Notes under the pieces: model-generated
Database searches by the model: none
Seen by the model: only the letters and a program-made list of their open reading frames with translations
What the model was told of the DNA's origin: nothing
Made by a program: the position numbers and the translations under genes
Part shown: in pieces, positions 23,496-64,000 of the stretch
Position numbering within the stretch: the stretch's first letter is position 1
How the letters are laid out: every line of letters begins with the position of its first letter
Assembly: GCF_000143415.4 (NCBI RefSeq)
Contig: NW_003314434.1
Coordinates: forward strand, 62,001 to 126,000
From: Selaginella moellendorffii
Lineage: Eukaryota; Plantae; Lycopodiophyta
Length of the DNA stretch: 64,000 nt
Direction of reading: 5' to 3'

Positions 23496-25310
23496 TGAAG
23501 GAACCAACTCCCTAAGGTGTCATAGGCTAAAGGATCCCCGAAAGCATGACCGAAATGACAAAGAGTTCATCGGATGGGACCAGGTCTAAGATCGAGTCCA
23601 AGATCGACTCTGAGACTGAGTTCGAGATAGAGTCTAGGATCGAGTTCGAGGCCGATTCGGAGACCGAGTTCGAGATTGAGTTTGAGACCAAGTTCGAGAC
23701 AGAGTCCAAGATCCGAGATTGGGTCCGAGACCAAGTCCGAGGTTGATTCCGAAGTTGAGTCCGAGATCGGGTCCGAGATCGAGTTCAAGATCGAATCCGA
23801 GACCGTGTCTGAGTACTAATACAAGTCAAGGGGTGAAAGCCCAAAGCATGCATCTCCTAGGGGGGGGGGGGGGGGGGGGGGNNNNNNNNNNNNNNNNNNN
23901 NNNNNNNNNNNNNNNNNNNNNNNNNNNNNNNNNNNNNNNNNNNNNNNNNNNNNNNNNNNNNNNNNNNNNNNNNNNNNNNNNNNNNNNNNNNNNNNNNNNN
24001 NNNNNNNNNNNNNNNNNNNNNNNNNNNNNNNNNNNNNNNNNNNNNNNNNNNNNNNNNNNNNNNNNNNNNNNNNNNNNNNNNNNNNNNNNNNNNNNNNNNN
24101 NNNNNNNNNNNNNNNNNNNNNNNNNNNNNNNNNNNNNNNNNNNNNNNNNNNNNNNNNNNNNNNNNNNNNNNNNNNNNNNNNNNNNNNNNNNNNNNNNNNN
24201 NNNNNNNNNNNNNNNNNNNNNNNNNNNNNNNNNNNNNNNNNNNNNNNNNNNNNNNNNNNNNNNNNNNNNNNNNNNNNNNNNNNNNNNNNNNNNNNNNNNN
24301 NNNNNNNNNNNNNNNNNNNNNNNNNNNNNNNNNNNNNNNNNNNNNNNNNNNNNNNNNNNNNNNNNNNNNNNNNNNNNNNNNNNNNNNNNNNNNNNNNNNN
24401 NNNNNNNNNNNNNNNNNNNNNNNNNNNNNNNNNNNNNNNNNNNNNNNNNNNNNNNNNNNNNNNNNNNNNNNNNNNNNNNNNNNNNNNNNNNNNNNNNNNN
24501 NNNNNNNNNNNNNNNNNNNNNNNNNNNNNNNNNNNNNNNNNNNNNNNNNNNNNNNNNNNNNNNNNNNNNNNNNNNNNNNNNNNNNNNNNNNNNNNNNNNN
24601 NNAGGGATAGTGAGGTCCAAGAACCAGTCTTGAAGGAACTCTCCAGTGGTGCTTCCAAACTAACTTGAGGTTGAGACTAAGGCCAAGGGGTCTTGGGTGG
24701 GAGTGAGCATGGACTCGGGTGGTGCTGGAGGGGCCACCCAAGGAAGTGCTCAAGAGCAGCTCCCACTCCCGAAAGGGAAACTGACTGCAATGCTCCCGGC
24801 TCATGTAAAGTGGTGCCCCACTTGAGTACCTTGTGGCTCATTGGTCCTCGCCCTTCCTAGGGGCTTGGGCCTTCCCTTCGGGATTGAAGTGGGGGGTTAG
24901 AGGTACCTATACCAGGCCGTTAGGCCACAGTGTTTTGCCCTGTGTCCCGAAGCAAGTGTTGCACCTAAGGCTTGGGATTTAGAGGGTCCCATGATCAAGT
25001 CTTGTTGTACTAAGGGAGGTTAGGAACTTAGAGGCTTGGTGTGCTTGGCTGCTTGTGCCTGCGGGGAGTGTAATTGAACCTTAATTCTAGTCTAATCCGG
25101 GGAGGGGGATTGGGAGAAATTTGGGAATCCGTGGATAGATGGCTAACGCTTCGTTGCTCGTGCAATGAGTAGTTGAAACCAAGTAAGACCAAGTAGGAGT
25201 TGGTACAATAGGCGGGAACCTTAGCCAGGGAACTTAGCAAAAACCAAGGCAGTGTTGGTCGGATAGACGAGGTAAGCTGGCAAATTGGAAAGAAAAATTT
25301 GTAACTTACA
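23496..25310 (+). mobile_element. Solo LTR (second family) spanning the assembly gap
   Basis: TGAAGG...CTTACA termini. Flanks GTAGC (23491-23495) and ATAGC (25311-25315) form a 5-bp TSD with one transition. Removing the insert restores colinearity with ~28980-29050. Confidence 0.7.
23882..24602. other. Assembly gap (721 N) after a poly-G tract
   Basis: Run of N preceded by >20 G. Confidence 1.
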
Positions 25311-45697: not shown

Positions 45698-46922
45698 TCA
45701 AACCGAGCTGACATATTCTTCGTGCTCCTCCTTGTTGTCAGGAATTGCCGGCGGTGCCGCGCTCGATTCAACGTAGCCGCCATACACATACGATACGAAT
45801 CCCCAGCAGGAGAGGAGCAGAGCCATGACTTTAAGCCCACCAAAAGCGTCATGGAAGAAGATATATGCAAACACTGCTCCCACTGGGATCACCACGGTAA
45901 GAATCACTCCAGCCAGCAGCGACGATGAGAGAAAAATAACACCCATTGTTCCCAGGAACGCAGCTTGCCAGGCCAGAGTGGAGCACAACAAAGTCACGAA
46001 GTAGGCGAGACTTCCGGCCTTGAACACCGCGGCCTCGACGTGAATGGCCTCAAAGTCGTTGTTGATGGCCATGCCGACAGTGGAGACGATGGTAGCAACC
46101 AGCGCGGTGGAGGTTTGCATTTGCAAGACTAGCAAGGTGGACTTTCGGCCCAGGACTTTGGCAAAGACGAGCTCGGTGAGGGACAGGATGAGGCCGTAGA
46201 GTCCAGCAGCAGTGATCGTCATGACATAGCCGTGCCCCGTCTGCTCCCGGCTAACTCCCGGAAGCTCGTCGGAGCTGGAGTGGAGGCCCAAGAGCACGGC
46301 ACTGGAGCTGACGAGCACGATGGAGTTCCAGACGTATGGGCCGATGCTCTTCCGGAGGAGGAACAAGGCGAAGAGGGAGTTGAAGGCGAGCTGGCTGGAT
46401 GTCAAGAGTCCTGCAGTGGAGGCCGGGAGATACGACATCCCCCACGAGTAGAGGAAGTTGTCGAGAGCGATGAGGCAGCCGATGGAAGCGAAAGCAGCGA
46501 CGAGTTTGAAGCTGAAGGGTGCGAGAAGGTGGTGGTGGCCGGGGGAATCGCTGCTGCTGCTGCTGGCTTTGAAGTAGACGATCAGCATTGCGAGCGCACA
46601 GACCGGCCAGCCAGCGGTTTGGACCCAGCCGCAGAGCCAGCGCCGGGAGCCACCGTTGGAATAGTAGAAGCGCATGAGCAGCGTGGCGGCGATGAAACCG
46701 ACGAACATTCCGGTGGAGCTCAGGCACAGGAGCAGCCAGTGCTTGCGGCTCTTGCTCCTCAAGGCCCGCGCCAAGGCCGTGCTCCATTCGCCATCGAAAG
46801 CACTCAAGCCTGGAAAACCAAAATACCAACACCGTACGTTTCGGTTCTTTATATGCAAGGTGGATCTCACCTTTGGGCATGGTCTCTTCTGGAGCAACTT
46901 TGTCGGCATTGAGCTCCGCCAT
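45698..46922 (-). CDS. Purine permease (PUP) family transporter, 2 exons
   Basis: RFYYSNGGSRRWLCGWVQTAGWP, DNFLYSWGMSYLPAST, SQLAFNSLF, SSLLAGVI; many hydrophobic segments; ATG at 46922 with a short first exon. Confidence 0.9.
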
Positions 46923-56738: not shown

Positions 56739-59700
56739 ATGGAGGAGATTTCTGGCAGCAGCAGCGGCAACAGCAGCAGCAGCAGCAGCAGCAACAACGG
56801 CGGCGACGAGTGGGCGGCGAGAGGGCTGGAGAATGAGCCCCATTCCTCCATGCCCGAGTTGGAACAACAGGAGCGCCGGATCCTGAGAGGGAAAGGTCTA
56901 GCTCGCAGCTCCAGCGGCATTAGCGGCAGTGAGGACATTGGAACGAGCTCCACTGCCGCTGGCGCTGGCGAATCGCTCAGGGGGTACCAGAGCAGTGCTG
57001 CGTTGAAGGCTTGCTCGGATTCCCTGTCTCTGGGGTTTGAGTTTGGGGATGTAGATGGTTCCAGGATCGCGGCGGAGATTATCTCGGAGCTTGGGCGGGG
57101 GCTTCGCAATCAAGCCGAGGCACTGAGGATCATGGAAGAGGATACTCCTGAGACCGAGCAGCAGTGTTTTTTGCTAGCGCCTCCGGGAGCTAACAAGTCC
57201 CAGCTACACAAGCTTTCCAAGAGGACGAAGCTTGTTACTTTTGCTGCGTAAGTCTTGGTGGTTTTACCTTCCATAAATTCCTTTTGGATTTTTTATGACA
57301 CCACTGCAGGCGTAGGAAGACTCGAGAGACGCAGGCTTTTGAGCTACAGATCCAGGAGCTTCGCAGGGAGATGTCTATCGCAGAGAAGGAGGAAGAGAAA
57401 ATCGTTCCCATCGCGCCCCGGGAGGTGGAGCCAGAAGAACCTTTTGCTGGAGAGGCTAGGATGGATCTTACAGATGATTTGCTTCACAAGGTAACTTTTG
57501 TTTATTGATGTGGAGCTAGAATACCTGTTGAAACTGTGCAGGTTTTCTCTTATCTGGATGACGTCTCCTTGTGTCGTGCGGCAATAGTTTGTCGGCAATG
57601 GCGTGTCGCAAGTGCGCACGAGGACTTTTGGAAGATTTTGAATTTTGAAGGCCGACGGGTGACTCCGAAGCAAGGTGACCGCATCAATGTTGCAATTGTT
57701 TCTTACAAAATCTTCTGCAGTGAGAAACTTATGCCAAAGGTATCCCAACGCAATCGAGCTAAACCTGAAATGTAAAATTGTGGAGGATCTACTTGCGCTT
57801 GACGCAATCCGGAGCCTCAGGTGACGAGTAATTCAAGTGATTACTTTTTCATGCACTCATCCCTGTTTTTTCTTTGAATTTCAGAGCACTGCAGGTTCTT
57901 AGCTTGGGAGAGGGGTTATATGGTGATCCGTTCTTTCACGCTTTATCGGCCGAATGCGCTAGTTTGAGAACTTTGAGTATTTCAGACGCTGTCTTAGGCA
58001 GTGGAGCTTCTCAAGAGATACAGATCCGTCATGACCACTTGCTAAAACTCGATATTGTAAAATGCCGAGTTTTACGAGTTCATGTCCGGTAGGTACAGTG
58101 CTAAATGTTCAAGTTCTTGGTCCGTAACCTTATGTCTCGTTTGCAGAGGTTCACATTTGCAAGGGTTGTCTCTAAGACGCACAGGCACAGCTGCTGTAAT
58201 ACTTCACTGTCCTCGACTCTTGCGTCTTGATATATCGTCATGCCATAAGCTTTCTGATACTGGAGTGAGAGCAGCAGCGACAACCTGTCCACTTTTGTCG
58301 GAGCTGGATATATCTCATTGCTCTTATGTCAGTGATGAAACTCTGCGAGAGATTGCTATCGCGTGCTCAAACTTGAGGTCCCTTGATGCTTCAAATTGTC
58401 CTAACATTTCTCTTGAAGTAAGCATGAGAGTTGTAAGTTTGCGGATTAAATTCTGAGTCCGATTTTGCAGGGTGTTCGGATGCCAGTGCTCGTTTCTTTG
58501 ACCCTTGTCAATTGCGAAGGAATCAATTCCTCGTCTATGACGGCCATCTCTCATTGTTACATGCTCGAAGTAAGTCAAGGATGGACTTTGCACCCTGTTA
58601 ACTTTAGTCCTTCTCTTGCAGGAACTTCTTCTTGATTTTTGCTGGTTGCTGACGACGGTATCGCTAGACTTACCGCGCCTAAAGAAGATCAGTTTGACAA
58701 ACTGTCGGAAGTAAGTCCTCTTTTGTTTTATGGTCCCTTTCACTTTTTGGCATCTTTCACTTGGATCAGGTTTTCAGAGCTTGCTCTTCGTTCGCCAGCT
58801 CTGACATCGATCGATGTCACAAAGTGTCCAATGCTCAACAGAATTGATATAAGTTCGAGTAGCCTTCAGGTAAAGTGTCGGCTACGTGTTATAAATTACT
58901 TACATTCTATATACATTTTCTAACAGAAGCTAGTTCTAAATCAACAACAAAACCTGGCGACCATACTTTTGCAATGCCCATCCTTGTACGAGGTCGACTT
59001 GACAGACTGTGACTCGCTTTCGAACTCTTTATGTGAAGTCTTCAGTAATGGGGGCGGATGCCCGCGATTGAGATCACTTATCCTCGACAGCTGTGAGGTA
59101 TGTCCTTTCTGTTTCTCGAAATGGCAAGTGCACATGAGTACGCTGTGCAGGGTCTAACGGCTATAAGGTTATCGAGCTCATCGTTACTTTATTTATCTCT
59201 TGCTGGCTGCCGAACAGTTTCCTCTATCGATCTTCAGTGTCCAGAGCTTCAACGCTTGCTGTTAGATGGATGTGACCATCTCAGTCGGGCAAGCTTAAAA
59301 CCGGTATGTTTTCTTGGTTGGGTAATTGATGACTTAGATGCTGCTGTGTTGTGGCAGGTCGGATTGAGATCCTTAAATCTTGGAATCTGTCCCCACCTGA
59401 AAACACTTGTCATCAGAGCGGATCAGATGGTGGCTCTTGATCTCAGGGGGTGTGGAATTCTTCGCCAGGCGGAAATCATTTGCCCGTCTCTCCTGTCTTT
59501 AGATGCTTCGTACTGCAGGTTTGATCTGATAACACGTACGTTACTTGGTTGTTACTGATGCTGTACTGTGCAGCCAACTAGGAGATGACTGTCTTGCGGC
59601 CACGAGTAATGCATGCTCGCTTATACAGTCCCTTGTTCTGGCGTCATGTCCTTCCGTGGGACCAAGTGGTTTGCTAGCCTTGAAGCAGTTGCCGGGCTTA

Positions 59701-60676
59701 ACAGTTTTGGACCTCTCTTACACATTTTTGACCGACTTGTCTCCCATCTACGAAGCATGTCCTCAGTTGGAGGTCAGTGATTATCTTCGGAAAATTGTTG
59801 GGTGTTAAATTTTTTTCTCTCCAGGTCTTGAGGCTCTCTGCGTGTAAATACCTCGCCAACGACGCTTTGGTCGCCTTGCATGGTGGAAAACTACTTCCGG
59901 ATCTGCAAGAACTTGATCTTTCGTATGGGAGCCTTGACCGGAATGCAATCGACGGGCTGCTGTCGGAATGTCCCCACCTCAAACACGTCAGTCTCAATGG
60001 CTGCTCCAACGTGTTTGACATCGAGTGGCCGTCTGCAAGCACCGAGGAGGATACCCATATGCACGATGCTGACCGTGAAGAACAGCCAATGGAAGTTTCA
60101 GCGGAGAGGTGCTTGCAGACTTTGAACTGCGTCGGGTGCCCCAACATCAAGAGAGTTTTCATTCCGTCATCGGCTGGTTGCCTCCATCTCTCGATTCTGA
60201 ACCTCTCCTTGTCCACCAACATAAAGGAGGTACGACTGGCGTGCACGAACTTGATAGCTTTGAACTTGAGGTATGTGGATCGCATTCGCCTATCACCTTT
60301 GCCCTCTAACTTTGTGTTCTTTTAGTAACTGCCTGTCGCTCATGGATCTTAAACTGGATTGTCCCAAGCTCGTGAGCCTGTGTTTGCAGGTACTTAGTTT
60401 TCTTACGCCCAAAAAAAAAAACCTCTTTTCATCTCACCTCCTCGCTTGTAGGCATCTGGAATCGAGGAAGGCGAGCTGGAAGAAGCCATAAGAGATTGCA
60501 GTTTGCTGGAGACTTTAGACCTTCGGAACTGCCCAAAGGTGTGCCGACTTTCACTTTATTGCTCTTCTTTTCGCTAAAGCTGTTCCTTACAGATACAAAC
60601 TTCTACCCTGGTGAAAATACGAGCGATTCGTCCTGGAATAAAGCGACTCTATAACAGTTGGGGGACACCCGGCTAG
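56739..60676 (+). CDS. F-box/LRR protein 15 (SLOMO-like), multi-exon
   Basis: MDLTDDLLHK/VFSYLDDVSLCRAAIVCRQWRVASAHEDFW; CEVFSNGGGCPRLRSLILD; LSLDASYC; LTVLDLSYTFL; many Cys-LRRs; stop at 60674-60676. Confidence 0.9.
56754..56806 (+). repeat. (GCA)n microsatellite encoding poly-Ser/Asn
   Basis: GGCAGCAGCAGCGGCAACAGCAGCAGCAGCAGCAGCAGCAACAAC. Confidence 0.85.
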
Positions 60677-60855
60677 TAGCGCTGCTATTGTACAGGAAAA
60701 AGGAACAAAAGATAGCCGGCGACCAAAGATTATGAAAAGGAAAGGAGCTCCACCATCATCCAAGTGAGTGTGGATGGCTTGTTAGCATTGTTCGTGCTAA
60801 TAGCCATATAGTTTTGACAGGATATTATTGCCGGATAGCTGCCACAGTGAAAGCC

Positions 60856-61500
60856 TCAAAAGGTCCATTGTAATATCATAAATTCCCAGTATGTATGTTC
60901 AAGCTTCTTCTTCTGTCTTCTTCCGATGGTTCCTTCTGTCTTCTTACATGTGAAAGAAACATGCCGATGAGATATCAAAACTCGAAGCATGAAAACTCTA
61001 GTACCTGGAGCTCGCTAAGTTGCTGCTGCAAATAGACCTTCCGAACCAGTGGAATTTGCGAGAGGTTTTTAAGTGCAGCGAGTTCCTGTTTACAATCTAA
61101 AGACTTTAGTATGAATCACAACGCAAATTCCAACTTGCCTTTTCTAGCTCTGTGAGTTCCAGCGAGTAGGCGTTGGACACACGCGCAGAGAGTTCTTCCG
61201 CACGCTGGATAGCCTCCTTTGCGAGGTTCCCAGTCACCGCAACCAATCGCCTCGTACCCTTGGCGACTCCCTCTTCCGAGACAATAGCAAATGCCTCGGC
61301 CTGTCTAGTGTTCGAGAGGTGCGTTCCTGATAGTCGAATTTAGCGAGCTTTTTCGTTGCTAAACGATATCAACTTACCTCCGCACAGCTCCACCGAATGG
61401 GTCACGCAAGATGGATCATTAAGTTGGCGAGAAAGGAGGGAGATAAGCTCGCCAAGGCATGGATCCGCACCATCTTCTGGGTGTGCTACCGCGTCAACCT
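60856..61500 (-). pseudogene. Intron-containing alanyl-tRNA synthetase fragment (editing tRNA_SAD subdomain + linker)
   Basis: SVELCGG/THLSNTRQAEAFAIVSEEGVAKGTRRLVAVT..ELEK/ELAALKNLSQIPLVRKVYLQQQLSELQ/KTEGTIGR. The upstream frame is disrupted. Confidence 0.8.
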
Positions 61501-61746
61501 GCCAGGAAAAGGCTGCCATCTCCTTCGATGATGCCTGGGAGCTCCACCGGAAATGCACTCCCGGCCAACTCGGCCAGCTCTCTTTCATCGTCAAGCGTCA
61601 ACGCCGCGCCTGTGAGCCGATCAACAAGTTTGATGTTCTGAGAGCCTTCTCTCTAGGATTCCCCGCCGTAGCCGTCGAGGACGAGGCTGTGGCTGCAGCC
61701 ATCCTTAACTTAGTTCTCGCATAACGGTACGAGTTCATCTGTTTTA

Positions 61747-61813
61747 CATTTGTTTCATACAGCTCTTGACAATTCTCCCATTTGTTTCATACAGCTCTTG
61801 ACAACTCTCCCAT
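61747..61813. repeat. 32-bp tandem duplication
   Basis: CATTTGTTTCATACAGCTCTTGACAA(T/C)TCTCC x2. Confidence 0.9.
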
Positions 61814-61886
61814 CTTTAGAACACTACCGCTAATGGTATGGTACTTTTTATTCTTGTTTCGTTCAGCTCTAACAGTTATCGCATTT

Positions 61887-64000
61887 TTAGGATGAAAAAA
61901 TGTGAGCAGCGTGCTCCTCGGCTATGAGCATCGCTTTGCTGATTCCATCAACGTTGCTGCCCTGAAACAATATGAACATGTAAACGAGACGAGAAACTAA
62001 TACAAGGAAGGAGCTTACTTGTCCCTGAGCAAACATGGACTCGCCACCACTGTTCCCATTCAATGGCTCCAAAGCCTTTCTCAGCCACTCGACAGCGCCG
62101 ACTCCATTCCCCGCCACGAAACTTGGGACTCCAGCGCAGACCAGCACCTTTCTCGCCACTGAATCGACACTGAAGATCATCGTCGCAACGCTCTGAAAAT
62201 TAGCACACCACGGCAAGAAGTCATGATTGGTGATCGATCGAAAACACAGCCTTACTCTCTCGGTGCCTGCTGCAACACCTTCCCGGAGAGCAGTCGTGTC
62301 GAGGCCAACGTCGACTCTTAGAACGGACCATTTGAGGCCCCGCAAAACTGCCTGATCCACACAGCAAACTGTTGTCTCTATTGCTCTCTGCAGATTCAAG
62401 TCCAGAGCCCGTTGTCTTCCGATGGTTTCTTCTGTTGTGGTGGTTATGGGGGTTGACAGTAGCACAGATATCTCGAGCCCGCGGCTAAAAGCTTGGTTGA
62501 AGAGAATGCGCGTGTGGAGTGGAGAGATAAATGGGAACCACGAGAGGAAGATGATGGGAGCGAAGATCACGTAGCCCATGCCGACGTCGTAGCTCCAGGC
62601 CCAGACGGACATGAGCCACCACAGCCTCGCCTTCTTGAGCCATGGTTTGCAAGCTATGCCAATCTGCGAAGAAAGAGTTGGAGGTGATAATGGATTGGAG
62701 GGAAGCTACACAAAGCTTACGCTGAGAATCCCCCAGCCGGTGGGAATGAGAGCTAGGATGCTCGCTATAACATCCAGGACTTGGAGCCTCAGCGTGAAGA
62801 CGCATCCGGTGATGAAGGCAGCGAGAAGAACTATGAATGCAAGGAAGTGAACAAAGCGGAGCTTGTTACTGCTCCTTGGGCTGAGCGACAGGAACTACAA
62901 AAGAGAGAAACGTTTGATTAGCGTGAGAGCTGGCTGGGTTTGGAGCTTACCGCCACTAGCAAGCCTATGCAAACGAACAACACCCATGAACTTGCGTACA
63001 CCTGACAGCACAAGCTCTCTTGTTTGTGCATGCTCTTAAAGACGAAAACACAGCTTTTACCAGCAGAGAGATTGTTCCGACACCCGACCTGAGGTGATAA
63101 GCCACTCCAAACTGGATAAGGAAGAAGCGTAAGCTCAGGATGCATTCCACGGCTCTAGCTCGGAAGCCCATCAAATCCGTCTAGCAGAAAGAACAAGAGA
63201 AACACGAAACTAGTAGTTTTCAAGTTGGATAACTTTTCTTGTACCCGTTTTTCCCACCAGGTGGCCCAGCTCTCGTAATCCGGGGCGGAATGGCTCTTGT
63301 TTGTAAGCCAGTTATTCCAGTTGGTTATGTCTTCCACAGTCCTGGAAAAGAAGAATTTATCATTCGTGCAAACAACGCCATCAGACTAACTTACTTTTGC
63401 CACTCAAAGCTGAGTGGATTGAAGAAAAACGGGGCGTAGAGCCAGCATATGGCAAGGAAACCGATGTCCAGAGCCAGTAGAACGTATCCTTTTCTTGTCC
63501 GTTGTGCTCCATATACCACGTAGACGAACAACAGCATTGCTATCTCCAAACTACACGGGGATTAGCTTCGAACGAGGACATAAAAGACGTACCCTTTGAC
63601 AAAATGGCTGCGCGAGTAGAAGCGATAGTTCTCAGCAAAATGGACGTGCTCAATGACAAATCCACGCCCAGTGCTGCGATACTGACACACAACATCCATG
63701 GTTTAGAGGAGCTTCGAAGTTAATTCTTTCTTCACTTGCCATTGCACCTCCATGGAGTATCGTCCTACCAAAGTAGTGTGTTCTTGTGGCCAACGAGAAA
63801 GCAAAGAAAATAAACGAGCCCAGCAGCCACATGAGAATGAAGTACTGTAGAGCCTGAAAGTGAATAAAACTGAGCTTGTGAGACATTCCTTGTAAACTTG
63901 GAAAACATCACCTTGAGAAAGCCTTGCTCCAAAATGTAGCCCGTGACCATGGGAGCGCAGTTTAAGAACCCATACTGAAAAATCGCTTGCGTTGCAAGCA
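61887..64000 (-). CDS. Callose synthase (GSL/CalS, GT48) 3' portion with an in-frame AlaRS C-terminal extension; 5' part lies beyond the window
   Basis: RTHYFGRTILHGGA/YRSTGRGFV..FAENYRFYSRSHFVKG; YAPFFFNPLSFEWQK; ILSLRFF; IPTGWGILS; LSWFPFIS..TRILFNQAFSRGLEIS; the frame then continues into VLRVDVGLD..VCAGVP..EWL..AL.PL.G..AQGQG. Confidence 0.9.

Follow-up and report, generated by a model that had tools for sequence, protein, structure and literature searches.

The locus described here lies on scaffold GL377738.1 of the spikemoss Selaginella moellendorffii, in a stretch of 64 kb (hereafter the window) whose positions equal the record positions minus 62000. Near the end of the window, at record positions 122919-124435 (window 60919-62435), about 1.5 kb of intron-containing alanyl-tRNA synthetase (AlaRS) DNA, its parts circularly permuted, interrupts the last codons of a callose synthase (CalS) gene. 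This arrangement, which had been noticed in a preliminary description made from the sequence, was confirmed with a profile of 46 plant AlaRS proteins compared with the six-frame translation of window 59500-63000, and with the gene structure of the annotated S. moellendorffii AlaRS (P0066) mapped onto its own locus (L001, GL377658.1). P0066 is the only Selaginella AlaRS that was returned in the searches. The protein searches used single exons or uninterrupted open reading frames (ORFs) as queries, exons never being spliced together, and callose synthase protein P0047 served as the CalS reference for tblastn. Along the minus strand, from the CalS end to the far flank of the insert, the features are as follows.

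62436-62672, minus strand: last exon of the divergent CalS (...FNQAFSRGLEISVLLSTPITTT) up to the junction, located by tblastn with P0047
62415-62435, minus strand: 21-bp repeat copy 1 (ACAGAAGAAACCATCGGAAGA), which opens AlaRS-like exon 20
62435-62256, minus strand: AlaRS-like exon 20 (A1, TEETIGRQRALDLNLQ...GTER), 60 codons, matching exon 20 of P0066
62255-62193, minus strand: intron 20, 63 nt, GT-AG, in frame and stop-free
62192-62019, minus strand: AlaRS-like exon 21 (A2, C-Ala/DHHA1 core, ...AVEWLRKALEPLNGNSGGESMFAQGQ), from Pfam DHHA1 (E 0.005), PDB 5T5S and the profile
62018-61962, minus strand: intron 21, 57 nt, GT-AG, in frame and stop-free
61961-61887, minus strand: AlaRS-like last exon 22 (A3) with a TAA stop, 37% identical to plant AlaRS C-termini
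61725-61886, minus strand: AT-rich 3' flank of the AlaRS piece with AATAAA, from composition and motif
61434-61724, plus strand: GC-rich part of the spacer with a 97-codon ORF, non-AlaRS by the profile
61432-61378, minus strand: AlaRS-like exon 17, 3' part only (B1, SRQLNDPSCVTHSVELCG-G), profile positions 706-732
61377-61327, minus strand: intron 17, 51 nt
61326-61139, minus strand: AlaRS-like exon 18 (B2, THLSNTRQAEAFAIVSEEGVAKGTRRLVAVTG...), profile E 1e-22
61138-61086, minus strand: intron 18, 53 nt, GC-AG
61085-61005, minus strand: AlaRS-like exon 19 (B3, ELAALKNLSQIPLVRKVYLQQQLSELQ), from the profile and splice sites
61004-60940, minus strand: intron 19, 65 nt, ending ...gtaagaag
60939-60919, minus strand: first 21 nt of exon 20 in the B piece (repeat copy 2, ACAGAAGGAACCATCGGAAGA), after which AlaRS homology ends
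60899-60918, minus strand: purine-rich flank AGACAGAAGAAGAAGCTTGA with a third ACAGAAG and the putative original CalS stop

Two blocks of AlaRS sequence were located by the profile. The first, piece A (62408-61890), matched profile positions 826-939 with an E value of 4e-23 and also matched the C-Ala domain of human AlaRS (PDB 5T5S, E 2.7e-4). The second, piece B, consists of three exonic parts, of which B2 (61339-61109) matched profile positions 723-788 with an E value of 1e-22, and B1 (from about 61432, positions 706-732) and B3 (within 61115-60978, positions 785-816) gave weak but collinear matches, each with an E value of 0.12. No further AlaRS-like sequence was detected by the profile in 59500-63000, and blastn and tblastn revealed neither AlaRS sequence nor a parent gene elsewhere in the 64-kb window. 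The editing-domain exons had been placed at 61500-61005; the piece itself is real, but it starts at about 61432, in the middle of exon 17, and no AlaRS homology was found by the profile search in 61433-61500. In the order of the minus strand, profile positions 826-959 come first and 706-816 second, which is a circular permutation, and a check against the exon order of the P0066 gene led to the same result. In profile coordinates the two pieces follow on from each other (706-816, then 826-959), and the 21-bp repeat spans the positions missing between them, about 817-825. The pieces do not amount to a functional AlaRS, which requires the class II core and a complete editing domain: of the 959 profile positions, they cover 706-959 only.

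Both ends of the insert carry the direct repeat that had been reported for them, TCTTCCGATGGTT(C/T)CTTCTGT, at 60919-60939 and 62415-62435. The two copies are identical at 20 of 21 positions, lie 1496 bp apart and are the sole matches to the 21-mer in the 64 kb at three or fewer mismatches (0 in 100 shuffles). The copy in piece B stands directly 3' of intron 19 with its AG acceptor (...gtaagaag/ACAGAAGG, the slash marking the splice boundary), and the copy in piece A opens the 60-codon exon that aligns with exon 20 of P0066 (L001:13776-13952, 59 codons). Homology between the copies begins exactly at the first base of exon 20. Upstream of them the sequences are unrelated, being the CalS tail at the A copy and intron 19 at the B copy, and an extension of the homology past the 21-mer into the intron or the flank was ruled out by visual comparison. 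The 21-mer is native AlaRS sequence, and the insert has the terminal redundancy of one unit plus 21 bp. Because it is a native exon start behind an intron acceptor, the 21-mer provides no evidence for 21 bp of homology in CalS. The single mismatch lies at position 8, where the CalS-side copy has A and the one after the intron has G.

All five introns of the insert occupy the positions of those in P0066, every splice site is intact, and the intron lengths of 51-65 nt are typical of Selaginella. Since five introns stand at parental positions, the copy was DNA-mediated, in agreement with the preliminary description, and a processed retrocopy, in which introns would be absent and poly(A) present, is excluded. 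Intron 18 has a GC-AG boundary in the strong donor context AAG/GCAAGT. Introns 20 and 21 (63 and 57 nt) are both multiples of three and stop-free, a coincidence whose chance was estimated at roughly 1-2%.

GT48 callose synthases possess a conserved C-terminal membrane region that ends in ...FNQAFSRGL(E/Q)IS and is followed by a short tail. In the window, the tblastn matches of P0047 cover 64000-62454 with the exons intact, and thereby include the C-terminal region of CalS (GT48); identity was 48% over 62861-62454. The CalS gene is divergent: over the last ~420 residues (62454-64000, minus strand), identity to the best full-length representative is about 46%, and this conservation is far below that usual for CalS. 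The AlaRS piece takes the place of its natural short tail. A 241-codon ORF (61887-62612, minus strand) runs without a stop from the last CalS exon through the junction into AlaRS-like sequence, and this ORF, together with the P0047 matches, bears out the claim that the insertion lies in the last CalS exon. Because introns 20 and 21 are multiples of three without stops, the CalS-AlaRS ORF is open whether it is spliced or unspliced. Judged from the reading frame, CalS would lose about four codons and gain an in-frame AlaRS C-Ala region of 142 residues in the spliced form or 182 in the unspliced form, as well as the AlaRS stop codon and an AATAAA motif. In a search of representative proteins, the 241-aa ORF matched AlaRS proteins, P0066 among them, with nothing below an E value of 1e-30, and the ORF itself is absent from the public protein collection searched.

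The two flanks of the insert have a short sequence in common. The 9-mer ACAGAAGAA is found at 62435-62427, at the start of the first copy of the 21-mer, and again at 60916-60908, on the other side of the insert. Rejoining of the flanks at this 9-mer produces ...ACC ACC ACA ACA GAA GAA GAA GCT TGA, which translates into ...VLLSTPITTTTEEEA-stop (...TTTTEEEA) and leaves 15 residues after 'EIS'; complete CalS C-termini from the representative search have 7-24 residues after this motif, mostly 12 or 16. Rejoining at the 21-mer gives a tail of 37 residues, and blunt rejoining without the 21-mer gives one of 30. The original CalS may therefore have ended in ...TTTTEEEA, with its TGA at 60901-60899, the reading frame being that of the 9-mer rejoin. 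The GRRQKKK tail beyond the insert had been regarded as the displaced end of CalS. This assignment is not supported in that form, as it needs the 37-residue tail, and RRQKKK is the same DNA as the TTTTEEEA end read in another frame. Within this junction, the 13-mer AAGAAGACAGAAG, which spans the boundary of intron 19 and exon 20 (60945-60933), recurs 23 bp on at 60922-60910. The next gene, an F-box/leucine-rich repeat (LRR) gene (FBXL15-like, 1016 aa), extends on the plus strand from 56739 to about 60677 and is convergent to CalS; if the putative stop is taken as the CalS end, the gap between their 3' ends in the pre-insertion state would have been only ~220 bp.

Between exon 22 of piece A and the 3' part of exon 17 in piece B lies a spacer of 454 bp. 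Its AT-rich part (61886-61725) has AATAAA about 40 nt past the AlaRS stop and is plausibly the 3' untranslated region (UTR) of the donor. In this presumed 3' UTR, a 32-bp unit is repeated 2.1 times (61747-61813, 97% identical); this tandem duplication and the repeated 13-mer look like slippage during repair synthesis. The GC-rich part (61434-61724) places ~290 bp of non-AlaRS DNA before the junction at about 61433 and had no match in Pfam, NCBIfam or ESM Atlas. Its ORF aligned collinearly with residues 3-78 of ribosomal protein L3 (phmmer against PDB, E 0.36), with RREISSPRHGS against HRKFSAPRHGS around a PRHGS motif, which is an unconfirmed lead only. This RPL3 resemblance starts at 61434 (plus strand), 2 nt away from the boundary of AlaRS homology at 61432 (minus strand). 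Since the spacer contains non-AlaRS DNA, it fits complex filler DNA.

P0066, an AlaRS of the eukaryote type, was rejected as the donor of the insert: amino-acid identity per exon is 35-59%, and at the DNA level no more than 62 bp aligned, at 77% identity. The exon-intron structure of exons 17-22 is common to P0066 and the fragments, which also retain the CGGTH editing motif and the C-Ala core. The fragments are roughly as close to the AlaRS of moss, Ginkgo and conifers as P0066 is, and exon 18 is closer than P0066 to Physcomitrium AlaRS (57% versus 46%) and also 57% identical to Ginkgo AlaRS. The donor was not among the best 120 of 961 matches to the C-terminal region of P0066, none of which exceeded 57% identity to the fragments. 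When the last CalS exon (82 aa) and the 272-aa stop-free stretch were used as queries, the best matches had 60% and 59% identity, respectively. A search for an unpermuted donor copy had been recommended; the protein searches, which spanned lengths of 45-476 aa and 541-1720 aa, yielded no near-identical AlaRS, and no transcript-derived chimeric 3' end was found with the 82-aa and 272-aa queries among proteins of 45-476 aa. The B piece, which is untranslated, has its exons and splice sites intact and retains the CGGTH motif, and because of this intactness the donor is likely to be a distinct AlaRS lineage with introns of Selaginella size that was under selection until recently. P0066 itself is unusually divergent, reading ...LLFTNSGVVQFKRLLL... 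at the motif region, and its 90% cluster contains no allelic twin. Its gene model ends in two non-AlaRS exons (...YGFLSNFY..., L001:14171-14689 of GL377658.1) and looks mis-modelled.

Based on the permuted order and the structure of the junctions, a templated insertion at a break in CalS, in which a circular or repeated template was copied slightly more than once, is proposed for the formation of the locus, and we hold this explanation with somewhat better than even confidence. A break would have occurred in the last few codons of the divergent CalS gene, and genomic AlaRS DNA, introns included, would have been copied into it from a Selaginella paralogue of the cytosolic AlaRS. The insert could then represent a little over one full copy of a 1496-bp unit, beginning with exons 20-22 and the 3' flank, continuing through the 454-bp spacer and the stretch from the 3' part of exon 17 to the end of intron 19, and closing with the opening 21 nt of exon 20 once more. 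Repair synthesis may have proceeded slightly more than once around a circular template, may have used a head-to-tail duplicate as the template, or may have re-invaded the same linear donor upstream; the circle, the head-to-tail duplicate and the linear re-invasion predict the same sequence and are not distinguishable here. The sequence ACAGAAG(A/G)A, which is found both in the tail of CalS and at the beginning of exon 20, probably set both ends of the insert. A crossover within this imperfect CalS/AlaRS microhomology would put the mismatch at position 8 of the 21-mer, and the model predicts a pre-insertion site reading ...ACCACCACAACAGAAGAAGAAGCTTGA... The integration of a genomic circle by microhomology, as suggested in the preliminary description, is retained in one respect, in that the permutation is the expected footprint of a circular or head-to-tail template; it is not retained for the 21-mer, which is native to AlaRS and does not reflect homology in CalS.

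Several points weigh against this proposal. No donor locus was found, and within the protein lengths covered by the searches, identity never exceeded 60%. Both the microhomology and the original stop of CalS are themselves inferences. The breakpoint falls exactly at the start of an exon, which is a coincidence of roughly 1-2% under a model that involves DNA only; it may be attributed to the match between GAA-rich exon starts and the GAA-rich CalS tail. Finally, the right junction needs an extra slip of 23 bp.

The same final sequence could also arise if a colinear AlaRS fragment downstream of CalS was tandemly duplicated and two deletions left the permuted unit plus 21 bp, and the small tandem duplications do show local instability. 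However, at least three events would be needed, the endpoints of two independent deletions would have to fall within 21 bp of one position in the unit, and no remnant of a first B copy or of a second A copy is present; such trimming of a tandem array is considered unlikely, although it retains some weight. Among the templated and circle-based mechanisms, the least likely variant is a single crossover between an AlaRS circle and a 21-mer that already existed in the last CalS exon, the GRRQKKK tail then being the displaced CalS end. A single crossover classically leaves direct repeats around a permuted unit, and rejoining at the 21-mer leaves the frame open. This variant is nevertheless quite improbable in view of the native position of the 21-mer in an AlaRS exon after an intron acceptor, the very low probability of a chance 20/21 match in CalS (0 expected) and the length of the rejoined tail (37 residues after 'EIS' against 7-24 in complete CalS).

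To the same degree, it is doubtful that a second AlaRS paralogue downstream of CalS was broken in situ by local rearrangements with no separate donor. This history would account for the failure to find the donor among the annotated or transcript-derived proteins searched, but exons 1-16 have left no trace in the window, the CalS end would have lain only about 220 bp from the convergent F-box gene, and the intact, untranslated B piece with its CGGTH motif argues that a gene under selection was copied recently. Capture by a transposon is very unlikely. Helitrons and Pack-MULEs move intron-bearing gene fragments in plants, and the 9-bp flanking repeat would suit a Mutator-type target duplication; the insert, however, ends in direct repeats of gene sequence and has no terminal inverted repeats, no Helitron-type CTRR end with a convincing hairpin (a weak 6-pair stem only) and no second copy in the window or in the fetched loci. 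An assembly artefact is scarcely credible, since a 21-bp overlap is too short for a misjoin, no gap lies near the locus, and frames and splice sites are coherent across all junctions, even though the scaffold belongs to a two-haplotype Sanger assembly with gaps, including an N run at about 23.9-24.6 kb.

Complex rearrangements ascribed to microhomology-mediated break-induced replication or to fork stalling and template switching (MMBIR/FoSTeS) are an established class. The proposed templated insertion resembles them in its several template switches, its microhomology, its short tandem slips and the insertion of unrelated DNA; the switch points here are putative. Filler DNA is found at breaks in plants, where it can create chimeric genes, e.g., maize p2/p1 (PMC2686159). 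With such filler DNA the locus has in common an ectopic mosaic at the junction, a chimeric gene, small local duplications and the absence of transposon ends: three pieces (A, spacer and B) and two small duplications are present, and inverted terminal repeats are not. In contrast to plant filler DNA of tens of bp, the insert here measures about 1.5 kb and amounts to just over one unit, in permuted form, of a single gene. For the Rsp-like satellites of Drosophila, truncated units at the beginning and the end, which together make up one monomer, were interpreted as possible reintegrated circular DNA, with 7-bp microhomology, in a study that also discusses MMBIR/FoSTeS (PMC7403614). The insert described here is likewise circularly permuted, as expected of a circular-DNA footprint, with ends that sum to one unit and a putative 7-bp microhomology at the host junction. 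Unlike the satellites, the unit here is a fragment of a single-copy, intron-bearing, protein-coding gene in a land plant, and the circle proposed here is hypothetical. The locus is assigned to the templated or possibly circle-derived insertions of a gene fragment, a known type of event, and the interpretation in the preliminary description is partly supported.

A bolder version of the proposed templated insertion is that a small circle from an AlaRS paralogue was reintegrated in the germ line of the spikemoss and gave rise to a heritable, expressed CalS with a C-Ala domain; on the present sequence, the chance of this is small. If true, this would be a case from nature in which extrachromosomal circular DNA shuffled exons in a land plant. 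To our knowledge, germ-line insertions that point to a circular or concatemeric template have rarely been documented for single-copy genes of plants. In the locus described here, all junctions are readable at base resolution, and the event builds an in-frame chimeric gene. With the donor and an empty allele in hand, the locus would cleanly illustrate exon shuffling by break repair; at present, it is a well-described structural oddity, and the function of the chimera is putative.

An allelic haplotype was recognized through a single-exon purine-permease ORF (45701-46909, minus strand), which matches a gene product of assembly GCA_000143415.2 (scaffold GL377738.1) exactly and whose 90% cluster led to EFJ07515.1 on GL377684.1. 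The latter is the allelic scaffold and is collinear with the window. Between window 35698-56909 and GL377684.1:323225-344247, the haplotypes are 2-3% divergent, with ~11% at one end, and their alignment over these 21 kb contains 76 gap openings. The N run in the window (at about 23900-24600) is an assembly gap flanked by proline-rich and poly-G sequence. Between the permease and the CalS end lie a Myb gene (283 aa) and the F-box/LRR gene described above, both of which are spliced.

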